Of a stretch of DNA of 64,000 bases, positions 1,034-26,804 are shown in pieces. The stretch spans positions 62,001 through 126,000 of the forward strand of contig VJWM01000227.1 of NCBI GenBank assembly GCA_010909165.1, read 5' to 3'. The stretch is from Anthoceros angustus (taxonomy: Eukaryota; Plantae; Anthocerotophyta). The position numbers and the translations under genes are program-made. A model generated the notes under the pieces. The model did no database searches. It was not told the DNA's origin and worked only from the letters and a program-made list of their open reading frames with translations. The first letter of the stretch is position 1; each line of letters starts with the position of its first letter.

Positions 1034-2639
1034 ATGGACTGCCCAAGAGCAAGACCCCCGCGTGAGCTGGTGCTGCTGCTGTGGCTGCTGATGCTCCTTC
1101 TGGACAATGCGGGGACACATGCAGCTCCCCTGGTGCCGGCCTTGTACATTCTGGGCGACTCCCTGGTGGATCCAGGCAACAACAACTACATCCCTCTGGC
1201 GCTGGCCAAGGCCAACTTCCCCTACAACGGCATCGACTTCCCACAGGGCTTCACTGGCCGCTTCTGTAACGGACGCACCACTTTCGACATCGTCTGTAAG
1301 TGCACTAGTGGGATCATGGATTGGCTCTTCCCAGACAGTCTCCCAGTTCTTCCTTAACAGATTGTGTGGCTTGTCCAGCGAGTCTCCTGGGTTTCTCGAG
1401 ATACCCACCAGCCTATCTGGATCCTGCGGTGCAAGAAGGCAACGACCTCCTGCAAGGCGTGAATTTCGCATCTGCAGCAGCTGGAATTCTCGACTCCACC
1501 GGACTCAACTACGTATGCAAATCTCACACCTCAAAACTCAGACTGCGCAGGCCTGGTCTTTCTGGGAATAAACTATTCTATGCAATGCAATCTCTTCTGC
1601 TGGGCGAATCCTTCCTTCTGATTAATCTGGTACTAATCCTGGTTGCACGCACTGCAGGCTGAGCGGGTGCCTCTCAACATGCAGCTACACTATCTGGAAC
1701 ACGACACGCTTCCGACTCTCTTGAACGATTACTTCGACGGCGACCAGGCGCAGTTCCAAGCGTACCTGGCCAAGTCCTTGTGGACAATCGTGGTCGGCAG
1801 CAACGACTACATCAACAACTACCTGCTGGCCAAGAGCCCTTTGCGCGCCCTCTCTCCGCAATCTTACCAGCAGCTCCTCGTCACCTCCTTCCACACCCAA
1901 CTGGAGGTACCCATCACCATCTCTTCAATCTCCAACATTTCAGTCTTCTTCTTGCAGCGTCTGTCCGCTCATCATTGGACCGGGTGTGTGTGTGTGATGC
2001 TGCTGGCACAGAGATTGAGGAGCTTGGGCGCGAGCAAAATCATCGTGGCCGGAGTGGGCCCCCTGGGCTGCATCCCCTCCCAGCTCTCCAAGAACCCACA
2101 AACCAACGGCGCGTGCGTGGCTTCAGTCAACCAGCTCGTGGTAAACTTCAATGCCGCAGTGAAAGCCATGTTGGAAGGTCTCAATTCCAAGTACGCCGGC
2201 TCCTCCACCTTCGTCTTCGCCAACACGTACGACACCGTCTTCCCACTCATCAACAATCCCTCCCTCGCCGCTGCCAATGGTACTCCTCCTCCTGGACCAT
2301 CACTTACACGCATCTCCTTCAACAATCGCCATGACGCAGTGTCGCTCCCGAAATCTTGTGATCATCAACTTTGCATTTTGTCATCTGACTACATACAACT
2401 CTCCTCATCCAGGTTTCCAGGTGACCAACGTAGGATGCTGTGGCGCTGGAGCTTACAACGGGGTCACTCCTTGCGCCTATTTCCTAGGGGCCACAGTCTG
2501 TCCCGACAGAACGAAATACATCTTCTGGGATGCATTCCACCCCACAGACGGTGTTAATACCATCATCGCCAATCAAATTTTTTCTGGAGGGCCGGAAGCC
2601 ATCAGCCCTATCAATGTTAGACAGCTAGCTGCAATTTGA
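1034..2639 (+). CDS. GDSL esterase/lipase, 5 exons (1034-1295, 1379-1512, 1658-1906, 2012-2279, 2413-2639)
   Basis: Signal peptide; blocks ILGDSLVDPGNNNY, GRFCNG, GVNFASAAAG, GSNDY and WDAFHP; GT-AG introns at the usual family positions. Confidence 0.95.
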
Positions 2640-12907: not shown

Positions 12908-14110
12908 ATGGGGATCGTGGAGAAAATCAAGGAGATCGAGGCCGAGATGGCCCGGACTCAGAAGAACAAGGCCACGGAGTACCACTTGGGGCAGCTCAAG
13001 GCTAAGATTGCCAAGCTGAGGACCCAGCTGCTGGAGCCGCCGAAAGGATCGACTGGAGCGGGGGATGGTTTCGAGGTGACTAAATTCGGGCATGGTCGGG
13101 TTGCGCTGATAGGGTTTCCTAGTGTGGGGAAGTCCACATTGCTGACCCTTCTTACGGGCACGCAGTCCGAAACAGCAGCGTATGAGTTCACAACCCTGAC
13201 ATGTATTCCCGGGATTATACATTACAACGATGCCAAGATACAACTTCTTGATCTGCCGGGTATTATTGAAGGAGCTTCGGAGGGGAAAGGTCGTGGACGG
13301 CAGGTTATCGCAGTGGCCAAGTCCTCTGATTTGGTTCTGATGGTTTTAGATGCTTCCAAGAGTGAGGGTCATAGGCAGATTCTGACCAGAGAGTTGGAAG
13401 CTGTGGGGTTGCGGCTTAATAAAAGTCCTCCTCAGATTTATTTCAAGAGGAAGAAGACAGGGGGCATTTCCTTCAACACCACAGCGGCCCTCACCCATGT
13501 AGATGAGAAGCTGTGCTATCAGATTCTGCACGAGTACAAGATCCACAATGCTGAGGTGCTGTTCAGGGAGGACGCCACAGTCGATGACCTGATTGATGTT
13601 ATTGAGGGAAACCGGAAGTACATCAAATGTGTGTACGTCTACAACAAGATTGATGTTGTGGGGATTGACGATGTTGACAGATTAGCCCGCCAGCCCAACT
13701 CCATCGTTATCAGCTGCAATCTCCAGCTGAACCTAGATAGACTATTGGCCAAGATGTGGGACGAGATGGGCCTTGTACGTGTTTACACGAAGCCGCAAGG
13801 TCAGCAACCTGATTTCTCTGAGCCGGTCGTTCTTTCTACTGACAGAGGAGGCTGTTCGGTGGAAGACTTCTGCAACCATATTCATAGGAGTTTACTGAGA
13901 GATGTGAAGTACGTCCTGATCTGGGGGACCAGCTCCAAGCATTACCCTCAACGGTGTGGGACTCAACATGTTCTGCACGACGAAGATGTGGTCCAGATAG
14001 TCAAGAAGAAGGAGAAGGAGGAGGACGGTGGAAGGGGAAGATTCAAGTCCCACACTACAGGCCCTGCCAGGATCTCTGATAGGGAGAAGAAGGCTCCTCT
14101 TAAGACTTAG
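12908..14110 (+). CDS. DRG2: Developmentally regulated GTP-binding protein, DRG2 type, intronless
   Basis: One 400-aa ORF: MGIVEKIKEIEAEMARTQKNKATEYHLGQLKAK, G1 GFPSVGKS, YEFTTLT, DLPG, NKID and a C-terminal TGS domain. Confidence 0.97.
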   Translation: MGIVEKIKEIEAEMARTQKNKATEYHLGQLKAKIAKLRTQLLEPPKGSTGAGDGFEVTKFGHGRVALIGFPSVGKSTLLTLLTGTQSETAAYEFTTLTCIPGIIHYNDAKIQLLDLPGIIEGASEGKGRGRQVIAVAKSSDLVLMVLDASKSEGHRQILTRELEAVGLRLNKSPPQIYFKRKKTGGISFNTTAALTHVDEKLCYQILHEYKIHNAEVLFREDATVDDLIDVIEGNRKYIKCVYVYNKIDVVGIDDVDRLARQPNSIVISCNLQLNLDRLLAKMWDEMGLVRVYTKPQGQQPDFSEPVVLSTDRGGCSVEDFCNHIHRSLLRDVKYVLIWGTSSKHYPQRCGTQHVLHDEDVVQIVKKKEKEEDGGRGRFKSHTTGPARISDREKKAPLKT

Positions 14111-18923: not shown

Positions 18924-20272
18924 TCAGTGGTGGAAGGGCCGCCGAGCAGCAGGGAGAGGACGAAGGCGAATGAGGCGGTAGACAGCAGCTCCAGCCAGAG
19001 CCCCCAGCACTGGGCCCAGAAGGTACAACCAAATTGCAGTGTAATTGTTGGCAGCAATAGCAGGCCCCAGAGCTCTCACCGGGTTCATGGCTCCTCCTGA
19101 AGTTGGCCTGTGCTGGAGCTTGTTATTGCTACAGCTTAATACATGCTTTGGGAAGCTTGAAATGGTTGCATAGCCGAGGAGGTGAAGCTTACCCTGCTAT
19201 GACGATGTTGACCATCACAGTAGCTCCCACTGCCAAAGCTGCAAGCTCGCCAATCTGAGAGTAAACAGGACAAGTGTGGATGAGAACACTGTACTATCAT
19301 GGACGTTGGTTGCAGGCCTATGTAGTTACTTACAGCACGGGTGTCTGTGGCCACAGATGTAACAACGAACATGAGGTTGAAACTGATGATAAATTCCAGT
19401 ACAAATGACTGCCAGTTTGCTCCTGAGGGAACTGTGACACCGCCAGCTAGATCGGGGTGGAATACGGCTTTCAGGACATAGGATGCACACACTGAGCCAA
19501 GCACCTGTGCCACAATGTAGAGGGGAACCTGCAAGGAGAACCGTTTTTTGGGGCTGTCATCAGCAGCCTGGGCTCGGTTATGTCTCGAACTATGTTGAAG
19601 CAATGAGACCTGGCGTCCTGTGTGCCCTTGGACTTACCTGTAACCAAGGGAAATGGCGCAGAGCTGCAAAGGCCAGGGTTAAGGCAGGGTTGAGATGAGC
19701 TCCGGAAATGTGGCCGGTGGCAAGAATGACTGCCAAGGCTGTCAGGCCCGGGGCCGCCCCCAAGCCCAGCAAAGTCACATCACCTTTTGTCTTCTGGTTC
19801 ACTATTGCCGAGCCCACAGCCATGAACATGAGCAGGAATGTGCCTACGAATTCAGCTCCAAACTGTGTTCCCACAGAATTGTCATCAGTCTAATTAAAAC
19901 GCGGAGAGCAACCTGCAAAGCGATTTATGGTGCTAATTTGTTTCAAGGGTCTCGTAAACATAGGCACACACTGAATAGACAGGCTTGTGCAATGTTCCTC
20001 TATTCCAACAGTCATGGTATATGCAAATGATGTCAGTATTACATGGCCTCACAAACATGGCAACGTACCTTGCAGGCAAAAGATTCAGAGGAAGGGACAG
20101 CGCTGGCATCTTCAGGCACAAGCCCATCTCCACAGGCTTCCACAGGAAAGCATTTGTTAATCGGGACACGCCTGCTGGAAGAAAAACTCCTCTCCACATG
20201 AACTGGTACTGATCCCAACCTGGCGCTGCTGGAAATGACCAGCTCAGATGTGTTCACCTGGATGTCCTCCAT
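18924..20272 (-). CDS. NIP: NIP aquaporin, NIP-II (NIP5/6)-like, NPA/NPV motifs, ar/R filter P-I-G-R, 5 exons
   Basis: AEFVGTFLL, GHISGAHLNPA, VATDTRA/IGELAALAVG, GGAMNPVRALGPA; four introns at conserved NIP positions; NPA spacing 108 aa by manual count. Confidence 0.95.
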
Positions 20273-22143
20273 GGCAGCAAACCAGCTGGTAACTCTTGAA
20301 ATGCACTACACTTGGATAGCCTTCCCAACTCCAGCAATCCGGCAATGATTTTTCTGATTTTTTTGGCAATTTTTCTGGATGAAACTCAAGAGCAAGCTCA
20401 ACAATGAGACTTTACATGATTGGTTCACTTTTGTGAAAGTGCGCTCAAGCAACCTCCAGCTTCCTTTTCTGAAGGAATCTACAAAAGCATTGGGAGACCT
20501 TCGGTTTTTGTTTTTGGGTTTTTCATATGCATCTACAGCTAACAAGCACCTGCCTACACTCAAATGAATTTACATGACGGGAAAGCTTTTCTAAAGGTTT
20601 GATCAAGGAAGCAGCTTGTCCTCCAGCCCCAACTCCTGCTCGCCTCAAACAGTTGGAGAACGTCTACAAACTCAGCACACCGCTAATGACTCGAGACATC
20701 TCTACTATAGAAAACTTGTAAGTAAAGCAACCGTCGCCAACAGATCCCTGGGCCGCAGTCGTGAACCGCATTGATCAGCAACCCGCTCCTTGGAGGCAAC
20801 AAGCTCTGAGGGCAATAGAATAGGGATGGACAGTAGTAAGCAGAGGCGAGATATACATTGAGACACCGCTTTCAAACAAGTTTGTCTGTGAAGCTGATTT
20901 GTGCGTACACTTTGCTGTTGCTGGTGGCACACCGCCCAATGTCGGCAGTGGGATTCATCATAATCGAGAAAAAACAAAGCAGCTTCCAAATCAGCTTTGA
21001 CAGATCGTATTCCCAGCCTCCAGATGTGGTTTTTTGAGGTGGTTACGAGCACACGACCAGTCTCGGGTCCCGCCACACTCAGCAGTCAGAGTGGTGGGGC
21101 ACTGGCTTCCGCGTTGGGAAGGGCGGCCCTTGGTGAATGCCGACTGCGACAGGCCTCGTTTCACACAAGGCTCCCTCGTCATAAAATCTATGGTTAGCGC
21201 GCGAGCTTGAATGGCTGTGGCTATGAACGTACATAGTCTGTTTCCAAATGAGTCATATGACGAAGCCAAAGATGATGAAACCTGCTGAACTTGGTTGGTT
21301 CTGCACTCACTCCCCGAGGGAGGATTCAGGAAGTAAGAAAAGGACAGCTACCAGCATTCCAGTCTAGTGGGCACAAAGAACGAGCAACGTCCTCAGCGAG
21401 CTGAGGTGCTGCTAAGTCATTGGAAGATGGCTTTGTCCAGCCGTATCCTAATATTGCAATGGCTAAAATCATGTCTGCAAGGTGGTATGTACACGACCTT
21501 GGTTGGCGAGCCTTCCTTCTCGTACAATCTGCCTGTGGGCCATAGCAATTGTTTACAAGGACAGGCTCTGGCGGAGCGTCAGCAGAACGTCTGAGTCTCG
21601 TAGGCAACTTGCCTGAAGTGAATTCGCGGGTTTTCCACTGCGAAATTCTGTGGACCTTCAAGAGTATCCCATCAGCAACAGGGTCGGAAGCATGGGACAC
21701 CTGTCTGGAGTTTTGGGGTGCGGTACGATGTTGGTGGTGAGCCTGACGTATCGATGCTGTTGTGGTACTGTACAGAGCCTCTCATCTTTCTTTGGCCATA
21801 GAAAGCTTGGGTACATCGCTGCTCCTTCAGCTCATGTAAAGCTCATGCAGAATGTGTGCAGGCTGTTTTCCCACCCACATAAGTTCCAGCCAGGACAACT
21901 ATTAAACAGGGAAGCATGCAGACAGTGTCAGAAGTCTTGGTGCACTTTGTGGATGTCAATTGCGTATGTAATTCTGGTCGAGAGGTCTGAAATTGGCAGT
22001 GTAATTCTGGACATGCAGTCTGAAATTGGCAGGCTTGTGAATGAAAGGAGAGGAGATAGTGAGCTAGCCTAGCTAACCTGTCGGAGGGCAGTTAGGTCCA
22101 AATTTCAGCACCTGTACGTCTTCATTCGCATAATTCAGCAGCC

Positions 22144-23385
22144 ATGTCTCTCCCAAACGAGAGGGATGTGTCCATCCGGCACCCACTATTGATTATCGAA
22201 GACGACAAGTACAACATCTCCGTAGGAGACGCCGATGACACGAGGCCCGACGTTGAAGAAGCAGCACCCCCCGATTACTGGCACCACTTGCTGCAAAAGG
22301 TAAGGCACTAACTTAGAGCTGTGAGAGTTCTTTCAAAAGCCCTGGAGGCTGTTGCTCACATCGAAAGGTCTAAGCAGACGGTAGCAGAGCTGGTCGGGGC
22401 ATTTCTGCTGCTGGTGTTCTCAGGGGGTTCGGTGTTTGCAAACTATCTGAGTGGAGGAGGAATATCATTCTTGGGCATAGCTCTGGCTTCAGGTGCCACG
22501 GTCATGGCTGTGATTCTCTCTATAGGTCACATTTCAGGGGCTCATCTGAACCCTGCTGTGACCATTGCTTTTGCTGCAGCTCGTCAATTCCCATTGCTTG
22601 AGGTAAGCACGTAGAACTATGCTGCTGGCTGCTCGGATCTCATCTGCAAGAATTTGCTCAGGTAACTGAACCTGGACAATGATATGCTGCAGGTTCCCTT
22701 CTACCTAGCAGGACAGTTCACAGGGTGCATCCTTGCAGCCTTTGTCCTTAACATCATCTTTGGCCCTGCGGCGCCTGCAAGTCTCATAGTGACCAAGCCC
22801 TATGGAAGCAACCTCCAGTCGCTGGTGGCAGAAGCTCTTGCAACCTTCTTCATGATGTTCGTGGCCTCGGCAGTGGCCACTGACGCCCGAGCTGTGCCAC
22901 CCTATACCTGAAAGAACCCCCATGCGTTCTGCTTTATCGTTCTTGCAGTCATTGACGTGATCAATCCATCCTGTCTATGTTCTTCCAGGTCGGTGAGCTT
23001 GGCGCCATCGCTGTAGGAGCAACAGTCTTCCTCAACACTGTGTTTGCAGGGTATGGCATTCTCTTTCCTTTCCTCTTACCATATTGCACTTTGGATTTCA
23101 TAATTCTCTGGAATCAACACTCTCTGTGCTCAATCCAGCGCCATCTCTGGAGCATCTTTGAACCCAGCACGATCCCTGGGCCCTGCTATTGCCACTGGCA
23201 GTTACGGTGGTTTGTGGATTTATTTTTTGGGCCCTGTGGTAGGAGCTTTTCTGGGGACCTTGATGTACAACTTCTTACGAACCCAAGGAGGGGTCTTTCC
23301 GAAGGTGACGCGAATGCCTATTCTGGTGCCAAATGGCTCCAAGGCCGAAAAAGCGTTGGTGAAGCGCATCATTTATGGCAGATAG
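22144..23385 (+). CDS. NIP: NIP aquaporin, NPA/NPA motifs, ar/R filter S-T-A-R, 5 exons
   Basis: TVAELVGAFLL, GIALASGA...GHISGAHLNPA, VPFYLAGQFTG, VGELGAIAVGATVFLNTVFAG, AISGASLNPARSLGPA; conserved intron positions. Confidence 0.95.
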
Positions 23386-23612
23386 AAGACAGTAGCGCTG
23401 TGTCGCCTACCTTCTGTATGTCAAAAATAAGGTCCAAGAAGCCACTGGCAGGCCTTTACCAGAGCGTCAAAAACTCAAACGATCTACTTCCACGAAGATC
23501 TGGATCTGGAGTAACGGAAAACATCTGTCCACATCACACACAGCTCATCATAACATCACCCAGTTTTTGTGAAGCATATTAGTCTACATACATATGTCTA
23601 CAGGCCCTTCCG

Positions 23613-23826
23613 AGAGGGAAGCTGAGAGACAGCAAGTCATGAAAAGAGAGGAAGCTGAGAGACAGCAAGTCATGAAAAGAGAGGGAAGCTGAGAGACAGC
23701 AAGTCATGAAAAGAGAGGGAAGCTGAGAGAGCAAGTCATGAAAAGAGAGGAAGCTGAGAGACAGCAAGTCATGAAAAGAGAGGGAAGCTGAGAGACAGCA
23801 AGTCATGAAAAGAGAGGGAAGCTGAG
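23613..23826. repeat. 33-34-bp minisatellite, about 6 copies
   Basis: gagagggaagctgagagacagcaagtcatgaaaa repeated in tandem. Confidence 0.95.
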
Positions 23827-24561
23827 TGAAAACAGAAGGCTATAAAAGCAGAAAGCGAAAATGACCCACAACCAACATCGTGGTATTCCTGTCAGGATGC
23901 TCCTTGTCGATCATAAAGTCACCTTCCATGTGGACGATTAGTGTGAACCGCGCGTGCGAGTCCCACGTTGCAACTTGCACAGCTATTTGCTCGCCTTGCA
24001 AGTGATGCAAAGCGTCTCTTCATTGAACGGTAAGTGGGAGCAGGTAGAAGGCCTGCGAGAGAGGGACAAGTCCAGTCCAGCCCAGTCCAGCCAAAGTCCT
24101 TCCTTCCCGTGATTCTGCCACCAGCAGTCGACCGGCCAAAAGGGTCCCGGATAGGACAGCTCTCAGAGATTCAGAATTGGAAGTAGAATGCAGTCTAATC
24201 TTTGCTTCCAGCCTCTTCCGCCGGTGCTACGCACATTAAAGCTCCGGGTATGTCAGCAGGACAGAGTAATGCACCGAATTGCAAGTACTCCAGTACGCCG
24301 CTGGCAAGAAGCAGGCTATTTATGAGCCACCATGAAGCAACAAACCACACGCCAGTACTTCAAGACAGTCAGACCAGCAAGGGGAGAGGAGTTGGAAGAA
24401 CACACCCACCTTCCTCCTCTCGCATCGTCCTTTAAACTCCTCCTCCTTGCTGGACGTTTTGGTCCTGTTCGAATTCGAAGCTCGCATTCTCATCAGATGC
24501 AGACATTCTTGGACATCCTACAACTTGTTTGAACCAAGTTACAGGCTAGGCTCTTGCAGGA

Positions 24562-26804
24562 GTGAGCATGGGGGTGCGGCGGTTTTCCCTGCCCTGGGAA
24601 CGTCTGCTGGGGCTCACCACCTGGATGACCTTCTGCCTGCTGGTGAGGTCTCGACCTCCAGCGCAATTTATCTTTGGAGACTCTTTGGTGGATCAAGGAA
24701 ACAACAACTACCTGGCTGCATCCTTGGCCAAGGCCAACTTCAGGCCCAATGGCATTGACCGCCCAGACCACCAAGCCACAGGGCGTTTCTGCAACAATGC
24801 CATCATTCCTGACCTCATCGGTGAGTTTGGAATGGATGGAAAACTGGTGCTGTAGAGTGTGAGACTGGTCAGACAGTTGCTTGATTATTAGGAGAGTGGC
24901 TCTTGAATGCAGGTGAGGCTCTGGGGATACCGACTGTGCCTGCAGTGCTGGACCCTCGGGCCCGTGGCCAGAATCTGCTCAACGGTGTTAGCTTTGCGTC
25001 AGCTGGAGCTGGAATTTTGAATGACACAGGATCCATATTTGTAAGCTCTTTGTTGATGTCTACGTTCCAGATGCCTACTCAGTTTTTTCTGCCAGCAGGG
25101 CTACGCTGAATCAAAATCATGTGGGGCTTGTGAATGAAAGGAGAGGAGATAGTGAGCTAGCCTAGCTAACCTGTCGGAGGGCAGTTAGGTCCAAATTTCA
25201 GCACCTGTACGTCTTCATTCGCATAATTCAGCAGCCATGTCTCTCCCAAACGAGAGGGATGTGTCCATCCGGCACCCACTATTGATTATCGAAGACGACA
25301 AGTACAACATCTCCGTAGGAGACGCCGATGACACGAGGCCCGACGTTGAAGAAGCAGCACCCCCGATTACTGGCACCACTTGCTGCAAAGGTAAGGCACT
25401 AACTTAGAGCTGTGAGAGTTCTTTCAAAAGCCCTGGAGGCTGTTGCTCACATCGAAAGGTCTAAGCAGACGGTAGCAGAGCTGGTCGGGGCATTTCTGCT
25501 GCTGGTGTTCTCAGGGGTTCGGTGTTTGCAAACTATCTGAGTGGAGGAGGAATATCATTCTTGGGCATAGCTCTGGCTTCAGGTGCCACGGTCATGGCTG
25601 TGATTCTCTATAGGTCACATTTCAGGGGCTCATCTGAACCCTGCTGTGACCATTGCTTTGCTGCAGCTCGTCAATTCCCATTGCTTGAGGTAAGCACGTA
25701 GAACTATGCTGCTGGCTGCTCGGATCTCATCTGCAAGAATTTGCTCAGGTAACTGAACCTGGACAATGATATGCTGCAGGTTCCCTTCTACCTAGCAGGA
25801 CAGTTCACAGGGTGCATCCTTGCAGCCTTTGTCCTTAACATCATCTTTGGCCCTGCAAGTCTCATAGTGACCAAGCCCTATGGAAGCAACCTCCAGTCGC
25901 TGGTGGCAGAAGCTCTTGCAACCTTCTTCATGATGTTCGTGGCCTCGGCAGTGGCCACTGACGCCCGAGCTGTGCCACCCTATACCTGAAAGAACCCCAT
26001 GCGTTCTGCTTTATCGTTCTTGCAGTCATTGACGTGATCAATTCTCAAAGGAAGCGACAATACAGCCCTCCGAGATATCTGAACCTCCTCATCTCCACTT
26101 TCAGGGAGCAATTAGTGGTATCTCCCATTGAGCCCTGGCCCTGCCCCTCTCTTCACGAGCCTGTTCAGAACGATTTTTGTGAAAAACACAACCTTCCTGA
26201 CATGCTTCCTGGCTTGCTTGTGTTGATGAACAGCAAATCTACAACTATGGAGCACGCAAAATCGTGGTTGCAGGTATCGGGCCTCTGGGCTGCATCCCTT
26301 CACAACTCAACGCAGGCAGCAAGAACGGAGAGTGCGTGGACAGCGTCAACCAATATGCTCTCAGCTTCAACAGGGCTGTGAAGCCCATGCTGGCAGACTT
26401 GAATGCGCAGCTTCCAGGTGTGCACATAATCTTCTCAGAGAGCTACAACGTGGCCATGGACGTCCTCAACAATGCTGCGGCATATGGTAATTCCGACAAG
26501 TGCATGCAATCACTAAGGAGATGGGTGAATGTGGCTTAACTTGGAAACTCACTCTGAGAACCAACCTTGCTTGGCGCTTGCAGGCTTTACAGAGACGAAG
26601 ACAGCCTGCTGTGGAACAGGAAGGTTCAACGGCGTGATTGCATGCAGCCCTCTCGTGGGCTACTGTTCCGACAGAAGATCGCATTTCTGGTGGGATGCCT
26701 TCCACCCCTCTGACGAGGTCAACCGCATTGTGACTAACCGGATACTGAACGGACCACCTTCGGACATCCACCCGATGAACATCAAGCAGCTGATCGCTAT
26801 ATGA
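24562..26804 (+). pseudogene. GDSL lipase disrupted by a NIP gene fragment that replaces most of exon 3
   Basis: IFGDSLVDQGNNNY, GVSFASAGAG, RKIVVAGIGPLGCIP and WWDAFHP are present. The GxND block is absent and exon 3 resumes at 26040 (NSQRKRQYSPPRY). Confidence 0.8.
25125..26042 (+). pseudogene. Partial near-identical copy of the STAR NIP gene (5' flank and exons 1-3; source 22032-22965)
   Basis: Near identity to 22032-22965 apart from several 1-2-bp deletions in homopolymer or dinucleotide runs and one 9-bp deletion. Confidence 0.9.

Follow-up and report, generated by a model that had tools for sequence, protein, structure and literature searches.

A S-T-A-R selectivity filter in a transcribed NIP-type aquaporin of Anthoceros angustus, and its probable convergence with the horsetail filter

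If a bryophyte-grade plant carries the pore residues of a horsetail silicon channel, has it a silicon channel, and were these residues inherited from an early land plant or evolved anew? The question is raised by a stretch of 64,000 nucleotides from Anthoceros angustus (contig VJWM01000227.1, positions 62,001 to 126,000), which was analysed at its full length and is referred to as the window; all positions given below are positions of the window. It contains, at 22144–23385 on the forward strand, a gene for a NIP-type aquaporin, here called gene1. The original prediction, made from the bare letters, had read the selectivity filter of gene1 as Ser-Thr-Ala-Arg (S-T-A-R), proposed a silicon influx channel resembling NIP3 of the horsetail Equisetum arvense (EaNIP3), and left deep origin and convergence side by side. 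S-T-A-R is indeed the filter reported for silicon-permeable Equisetum channels. Taken as a whole, the reading that we favour, with moderate confidence, is that gene1 encodes a metalloid channel with a convergent S-T-A-R filter.

Gene structure and pore of gene1

Inspection of positions 21800–23800 revealed only one frame-consistent joining of exons at GT..AG borders. The resulting gene has five exons, a coding sequence of 891 nt and four introns, all of them GT..AG, and encodes 296 amino acids followed by a TAG stop at 23383–23385. Exon 1 (22144–22299, amino acids 1–52) runs from the ATG to a GT donor and encodes a cytosolic N-terminus, with a motif that recurs in the closest relative described below. 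Exon 2 (22378–22602, amino acids 53–127) encodes the transmembrane helices TM1 and TM2 and loop B, and exon 3 (22693–22893, amino acids 128–194) encodes TM3, loop C and TM4. The short exon 4 (22989–23050, amino acids 195–215, ending with the first two bases of codon 215) carries TM5; it rests on the model, the spliced transcript and an alignment with NIP2-1 proteins. Exon 5 (23139–23385, amino acids 215–296 and the stop) encodes loop E, TM6 and a C-terminal tail that is specific to the lineage.

A transcript contig of 1363 nt from one public run (X1) spans approximately 21850 to 23563 without a single difference from the window, and the four predicted introns are exactly absent from it. The same contig covers an untranslated region of at least 23386–23563 downstream of the stop codon, where it ends. 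Furthermore, runs from three related organisms contain contigs of gene1 that are 90–95% similar and have identical splice sites. The spliced contigs in public read data show that gene1 is transcribed, and the identical splicing shows that its exon structure is kept among close relatives. Exact look-ups of two of the exon open reading frames gave no match.

gene1 is an intact and transcribed NIP-type aquaporin. The Pfam family MIP (PF00230) was found above its cut-off in exon 2 (4e-15), exon 3 and exon 5 (1e-13), and the two Asn-Pro-Ala (NPA) motifs start at amino acids 110 and 223, as is typical of the MIP/aquaporin superfamily. The best match with a solved structure for these three exons was rice NIP2-1/Lsi1 (7nl4, 7cjs); exon 4, with its 20 amino acids, had no solved-structure match when searched alone. 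The nearest full-length relatives are all NIPs; gene1 groups with these plant proteins and not with PIPs, TIPs, SIPs or bacterial AqpZ, and in the tree described below gene1 lies within the land-plant NIP radiation, above an outgroup of bacterial-type proteins with the filter F-A-A-R.

The residues lining the pore were read against rice Lsi1, whose structure paper assigns the filter to Thr65 (TM1), Gly88 (TM2, the H2 position), Ser207 (TM5, the H5 position), and Gly216 and Arg222 (LE1 and LE2, in loop E), and the NPA asparagines to Asn108 and Asn219. The alignment is free of gaps across TM1, TM2 and loop B and again across loop E and TM6, so that exons 2 and 5 directly give four of the five equivalents. 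These are Ser67 for Thr65 (22420–22422), Ser90 for Gly88 (codon TCA, 22489–22491), Ala220 for Gly216 (23152–23154) and Arg226 for Arg222 (23170–23172). The remaining residue, Thr211 for Ser207 (23037–23039), follows from the fixed offset of 12 residues before the second NPA motif and from local alignment with NIP2-1 proteins. The filter is therefore S-T-A-R, and each of the four residues that the original prediction had aligned by hand was returned by this alignment rather than replaced by a different one. Both motifs are NPA (22549–22557 and 23161–23169) with 110 residues between them, the spacing that had been counted by hand. The Lsi1-like segments noticed earlier are present as well; VPFYWAAQFTG of Lsi1 is matched by the beginning of exon 3, and AISGASLNPAR aligns in loop E with AISGGSMNPAR.

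The only difference in length between gene1 and Lsi1 is an insertion of two residues in loop C, which appears as the single gap in the alignment of exon 3. Its place is between the residues that correspond to Val153 and Ile154 of Lsi1, and HMMER puts it at approximately 22777–22782. Thr157, Pro159 and Gly161 of the Lsi1 loop C are retained, and Gly155 is changed to Ile, Val160 to Tyr, Asn176 to Phe and Thr181 to Ala.

gene1 resembles Lsi1 in its small polar filter, the hydroxyl group at H5, the two NPA motifs and the retained Thr, Pro and Gly of loop C, although each position that differs between G-S-G-R and S-T-A-R is one step bulkier in gene1. The exchange of Thr65 for Ser67 is conservative. 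gene1 nevertheless departs from the NIP-III type, which is marked by G-S-G-R, a spacing of 108 residues, Thr65 in TM1 and Thr181 in TM4 (both described as unique to NIP-III) and membership of the NIP-III clade. EaNIP3 is reported with the same Ser in TM2, Thr in TM5, Ala at LE1 and Arg at LE2, and at the ‘fifth’ position in TM1 with Ala instead of the Ser67 of gene1. The silicon channels with S-T-A-R or G-S-G-R filters surveyed in the literature have spacings of 108 or 109, compared with 110 in gene1.

The gene1 subfamily and the origin of its filter

A search with exon 5 against 1.84 billion representative proteins returned as best match a fragment of 80 amino acids (P0001), and the full-length matches were all approximately 45% identical to the gene1 model. 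The 90% cluster of this fragment includes P0270, the 298 amino acid product of a transcript contig. With 54% identity over the full length, P0270 is the closest relative of gene1. The two proteins have in common the N-terminal motif, the PILVPNGSKAEK C-terminal tail, the two-residue insertion in loop C and the sequence FPL(L/A)E after loop B (amino acids 122–127 of gene1, approximately 22585–22602), where nine other aligned NIPs have FPWxQ or FPWxH. The spacing of P0270 is likewise 110, its TM1 residue is Ala, its motifs are NPA/NPV and its filter is T-I-A-R. Judged by the loop C insertion with the resulting spacing, FPL(L/A)E and the PILVPNGSKAEK tail, gene1 and P0270 form a lineage-specific NIP subfamily.

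Downstream of P0270 on its genomic contig (L002), at a distance of 1.6 kb and in the same orientation, lies a GDSL-lipase gene that matches the window exon by exon at 24637–26777. This GDSL gene (24637–26791 in the window) is an anchor of synteny between the two loci, and because of this common downstream neighbour P0270 is regarded as the positional orthologue of gene1 in a more distant plant. The exons of the two genes are approximately 70% identical at the nucleotide level. Exon 3 taken by itself has an identity of only about 42% to the orthologue. When P0270 was used as the query of a protein search, no full-length relative exceeded about 51% identity; the best matches were bryophyte, lycophyte and fern NIPs at 45–51%, which implies that orthologues of gene1 are absent as full-length representatives. 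When a NIP6-like backbone was combined with exons 3–5 of gene1, the results were dominated by angiosperm NIP6-1 proteins. None of the matches of any search was a protein named as hornwort. A look-up in a protein atlas yielded the assignment ‘NIP’ and no more.

A survey of bryophyte NIP filters had been suggested together with the original prediction, and we read the filter residues at the same offsets in 423 gathered proteins. The filters found include T-I-A-R, W-V-A-R, F-A-A-R, S-I-A-R, G-S-G-R, A-I-G-R, A-N-A-R, S-N-A-R and N-T-A-R, and a spacing of 108 is the norm in the F-A-A-R, NIP-II and NIP-III types. S-I-A-R, S-N-A-R, T-I-A-R and N-T-A-R are scattered over the surveyed proteins. S-T-A-R itself was present in a single protein, P0405, and in none of the other 422. 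P0405 is a transcript product of 294 amino acids from eight runs of one study (Logan runs SRR10393228-260; loci L003–L010). It has Ala in TM1, so that together with S-T-A-R it carries the exact five-residue signature reported for horsetail silicon channels. It is 60–67% identical to proteins with S-I-G-R and A-N-A-R filters and is not among the best matches of gene1. A profile search that started from basal NIP-II proteins and was aimed at EaNIP3 returned P0405, but no protein named Equisetum. P0405 and gene1 share the filter and differ in the remainder of the pore and in descent, P0405 having a spacing of 108, the motifs NPS/NPV and a position inside crown NIP-II.

A maximum likelihood tree was inferred under LG+C20+F+G4 from 69 rows picked by hand from the search results and rooted on the bacterial-type F-A-A-R proteins. 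The very long-branched P0043, P0055 and P0082 and a NIP7 protein, which had been part of a first tree of 84 rows, were left out. gene1 and P0270 form a pair with a support of 100/99. This pair is excluded from crown NIP-II (37 rows, including P0405 and the neighbouring gene3 described below; support 100/100), from crown NIP-III (seven rows) and from crown NIP-I, the latter two with SH-aLRT supports of 100 and 99. The tree thereby rules out that gene1 belongs to crown NIP-II or to crown NIP-III. The pair is instead found in the poorly resolved base of the land-plant NIPs, with a stem of 0.95 and terminal branches of 0.59 and 0.73. On its placement in this tree, gene1 represents a distinct NIP subfamily outside each of these three crowns. 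In approximately unbiased (AU) tests, a clade joining the pair with P0405 was rejected (p = 0.020).

Because P0270 has T-I-A-R, P0405 sits within crown NIP-II and a clade uniting P0405 with the pair is rejected, the S-T-A-R of gene1 is most likely convergent with that of the horsetails and not a deep inheritance. By the same comparison, the S-T-A-R filters of gene1 and P0405 have separate origins. Convergence is also the better of the two options originally proposed since S-T-A-R filters have already been reported in a fern, in sedges and in Amaranthus, several unrelated lineages; a deep common origin found no support. That plants evolved silicon channels convergently is in itself an established idea. 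The filter would have arisen within the gene1 lineage, apparently recently, and its simplest source would be a T-I-A-R of the NIP6 type with NPA/NPV motifs, the state still seen in P0270.

Several points weigh against this reading. A sister position of the pair to NIP-II or to NIP-III was not rejected (AU test p = 0.49 and p = 0.36, respectively). The suggested direction of change, from T-I-A-R to S-T-A-R, is drawn from two sequences and their resemblance to NIP-II, not from a reconstruction. Among the closest orthologues S-T-A-R was read in gene1 itself, and in the tree the filter of the horsetail channels was represented by P0405 instead of authentic EaNIP3 sequences.

Neighbouring genes and upstream leaders

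A tblastn search of the window with the gene1 model revealed a second NIP gene, gene3, located 1.9 kb upstream of gene1 on the opposite strand (18924–20272, reverse strand), in divergent orientation. Its five exons (20272–20069, 19862–19638, 19528–19334, 19254–19193 and 19107–18924) are joined by GT..AG introns in the same pattern as in gene1, and three of them match Pfam MIP. The encoded protein of 289 amino acids is NIP5;1-like, in agreement with its placement in crown NIP-II, and has Ala in TM1, the filter P-I-G-R, the motifs NPA/NPV and a spacing of 108.

The transcribed 5' leader of gene1 (21850–22143, forward strand; the X1 contig reaches about 21850) contains six upstream ATGs, and the frames that they open are between 1 and 39 codons long. 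Independently of the signal involved, six such ATGs point to a strong control of translation. Among the ATG-stop motifs of the sequence ATGTAA, one is located in this leader (21966–21971, position −178 from the start codon) and another just upstream of the end of the contig (21834–21839, position −310). gene3 also has two, at positions −303 and −145 relative to its start codon (upstream sequence to 20575). At the window-wide rate of 0.27 ATGTAA per kb per strand, a stretch of 350 nt would contain at least two of them with a probability of about 0.004 for each gene. In Arabidopsis, the leader of AtNIP5;1 has two ATG-stop elements at which ribosomes stall at high boron.

For gene1 this lead towards boron is weak because one of the motifs is seemingly not conserved and the other falls beyond the transcript as it is known. 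The contigs of the 90–95% similar orthologues match no further than 21970, and the motif at −178 appears to be absent from these orthologues. The resemblance to the Arabidopsis leader is stronger for gene3, and suggests that control of the NIP5;1 type may operate in a bryophyte-grade plant through the leader of this gene.

Downstream of gene1, the GDSL-lipase-like gene (forward strand) was identified by collinear tblastx matches with L002 and by Pfam Lipase_GDSL; the matched exons are 24637–24822, 24903–25073, 26040–26126, 26228–26488 and 26562–26777. A partial copy of gene1 is located in an intron of this gene, between flanking GDSL exons (25125–26042, forward strand). It corresponds to 22032–22965 of the source gene, that is the leader, exons 1–3 and part of intron 3, and blastn gave 98.3% identity over 934 nt. 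No base of the copy is substituted; it differs by seven small deletions, most of them within short runs of bases, and in addition by one loss of 9 bp in loop C. The small deletions shift its frame, and what is seen is either a broken copy of very young age or indel noise in the assembly.

Between gene1 and the GDSL gene, a 34-bp tandem repeat (23612–23830; approximately 6.4 copies with a likeness of 95%) begins some 50 nt past the end of the gene1 transcript contig. In a related organism, the joints between contig parts are rearranged at this place. Elsewhere in the window there is a second GDSL-lipase-like gene (1136–2612, forward strand) and an intronless open reading frame of 400 amino acids (12908–14107, forward strand) encoding a GTPase of the DRG/OBG type with MMR_HSR1 and TGS domains, an exact look-up of which gave no match. 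The large open reading frames of the window that were tested are this DRG-type GTPase, PPR proteins and the second GDSL gene.

Substrates and competing explanations

Like other NIPs, gene1 would form a tetramer in the membrane in which each subunit has a pore of its own. The narrowest point of this pore would be lined by Ser90 from TM2, Thr211 from TM5 and Ala220 and Arg226 from loop E, and Ser67 of TM1 would be exposed because the residue in TM2 is small. Such a filter would be fairly wide and rich in hydroxyl groups. We infer that it allows the passive passage of uncharged hydroxylated metalloids, almost certainly of boric acid and arsenite and possibly of silicic and germanic acid.

This proposal can be compared with published transport data. 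Changes at H5 of Lsi1 abolish the transport of both silicon and boron, whereas changes at H2 are without effect, and H5 also matters for boron in AtNIP5;1. Arsenite passes most filter variants and is little affected by H5. The mutation T65S in Lsi1 leaves the transport of germanium and arsenic intact. AtNIP5;1 did not gain silicon transport when given the filter of Lsi1, which shows that a filter alone is insufficient for a silicon channel. Contacts between loop C and the filter are thought to matter for silicon permeability. The rule of 108 residues has exceptions, in that a tomato channel with a spacing of 109 and a refitted GlpF pass silicon. Equisetum channels with Ala, Ser and Thr in TM1, TM2 and TM5 transport silicon, as cited from Gregoire et al. 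2012.

The alternative that survives best, though still a tentative one, is that gene1 is mainly a boric acid channel, one of two clustered, boron-regulated NIPs under ATG-stop control of the NIP5;1 type. It would fit the presence of a NIP5;1-like neighbour from crown NIP-II, the two ATGTAA motifs within approximately 310 nt upstream of each of the two genes, which recall the ribosome-stalling pair of AtNIP5;1, and the T-I-A-R filter of P0270, common in NIP6-1 proteins. gene1 itself resembles the NIP-II channels AtNIP5;1 and AtNIP6;1 in its small residue at H2, in Ala and Arg of loop E and perhaps in the ATG-stop motifs of the leader. However, the fate of these motifs among the orthologues and their position relative to the transcript speak against such control of gene1. 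Furthermore, NIP-II boron channels have Ile or Val at H5 and NPS or NPA combined with NPV, as P0270 does with T-I-A-R and NPA/NPV, whereas gene1 has Thr and NPA/NPA.

The silicon reading of the original prediction stands in part. With its filter and the hydroxyl group at H5, gene1 is a legitimate candidate for the permeation of silicic acid, which is plausible from its sequence. To go further and regard it as a channel dedicated to the influx of silicic acid, and so as the counterpart in function of EaNIP3 and rice Lsi1, seems doubtful to us. The four filter residues are those of the silicon-permeable Equisetum channels, the H5 hydroxyl is needed by Lsi1 for the passage of silicon, the Ser in TM1 corresponds to a T65S exchange that leaves Lsi1 active, the equivalents of T157, P159 and G161 in loop C are kept, and the 108-residue rule is contested. 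Against this, the spacing of 110 results from an insertion in loop C, a region tied to silicon permeability by both spacing experiments and the Lsi1 structure, and in gene1 the Lsi1-specific Thr181 is replaced by Ala, and Asn176 by Phe. In other words, a filter compatible with silicic acid is combined with an altered loop C and with the absence of the Thr181 specific to NIP-III, and the AtNIP5;1 experiment cautions against reading a function from the filter. In addition, the positional orthologue P0270 has a filter of the boron type, and no gene for an Lsi2-like protein was seen among the large open reading frames of the window, although this check was not thorough. A literature search on silicon in hornworts yielded nothing relevant on silicon content. 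On balance, we think it unlikely that gene1 serves silicon uptake.

Still less probable is that the change of filter is neutral drift and brought no new role in substrate transport, gene1 being a redundant duplicate on which constraint was relaxed. The long stem and terminal branches of the pair, the low identity of exon 3 to P0270 and the broken copy of gene1 nearby could be taken as signs of this; on the other hand, the frame of gene1 is intact with all conserved MIP motifs kept, and several runs and species yielded its transcript, assembled to a good depth and with the splicing conserved. That gene1 and the horsetails took their filter from one ancient S-T-A-R-bearing NIP of early land plants, as the four identical residues and an unrejected sister position to NIP-II might suggest, is very improbable given the T-I-A-R of a syntenic orthologue, the nested P0405 with its rejected common clade, the other 422 surveyed proteins with their scattered S-I-A-R, S-N-A-R, T-I-A-R and N-T-A-R filters, and the several unrelated S-T-A-R lineages listed in the literature.

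Under the favoured reading, a metalloid channel with a convergent S-T-A-R filter, gene1 is a bryophyte-grade candidate for the uptake of silicon or other metalloids. What appears to be new is that a bryophyte-grade plant has S-T-A-R in a separate NIP subfamily with a spacing of 110, and that the orthologue at the syntenic locus has T-I-A-R. This combination touches on the questions of how often and from what material silicon channels have evolved, and of whether the filter or the geometry of the 108-residue loop decides on silicon permeability. gene1 and P0270 are a natural pair for these questions, as they differ at H2 (Ser or Thr), at H5 (Thr or Ile) and in the second NPA motif and have the unusual 110-spaced scaffold in common.

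There is an outside chance that the lineage has independently built a NIP permeable to silicic acid, by placing the S-T-A-R filter on the 110-spaced scaffold of a separate subfamily. If true, silicon channels would have originated independently once more among land plants, and nature would supply a counter-example to the rule of 108 residues, with the T-I-A-R orthologue P0270 as a built-in control. As for gene3, the ATG-stop motifs at distances like those in Arabidopsis suggest that the boron-dependent control of NIP translation may predate the vascular plants.

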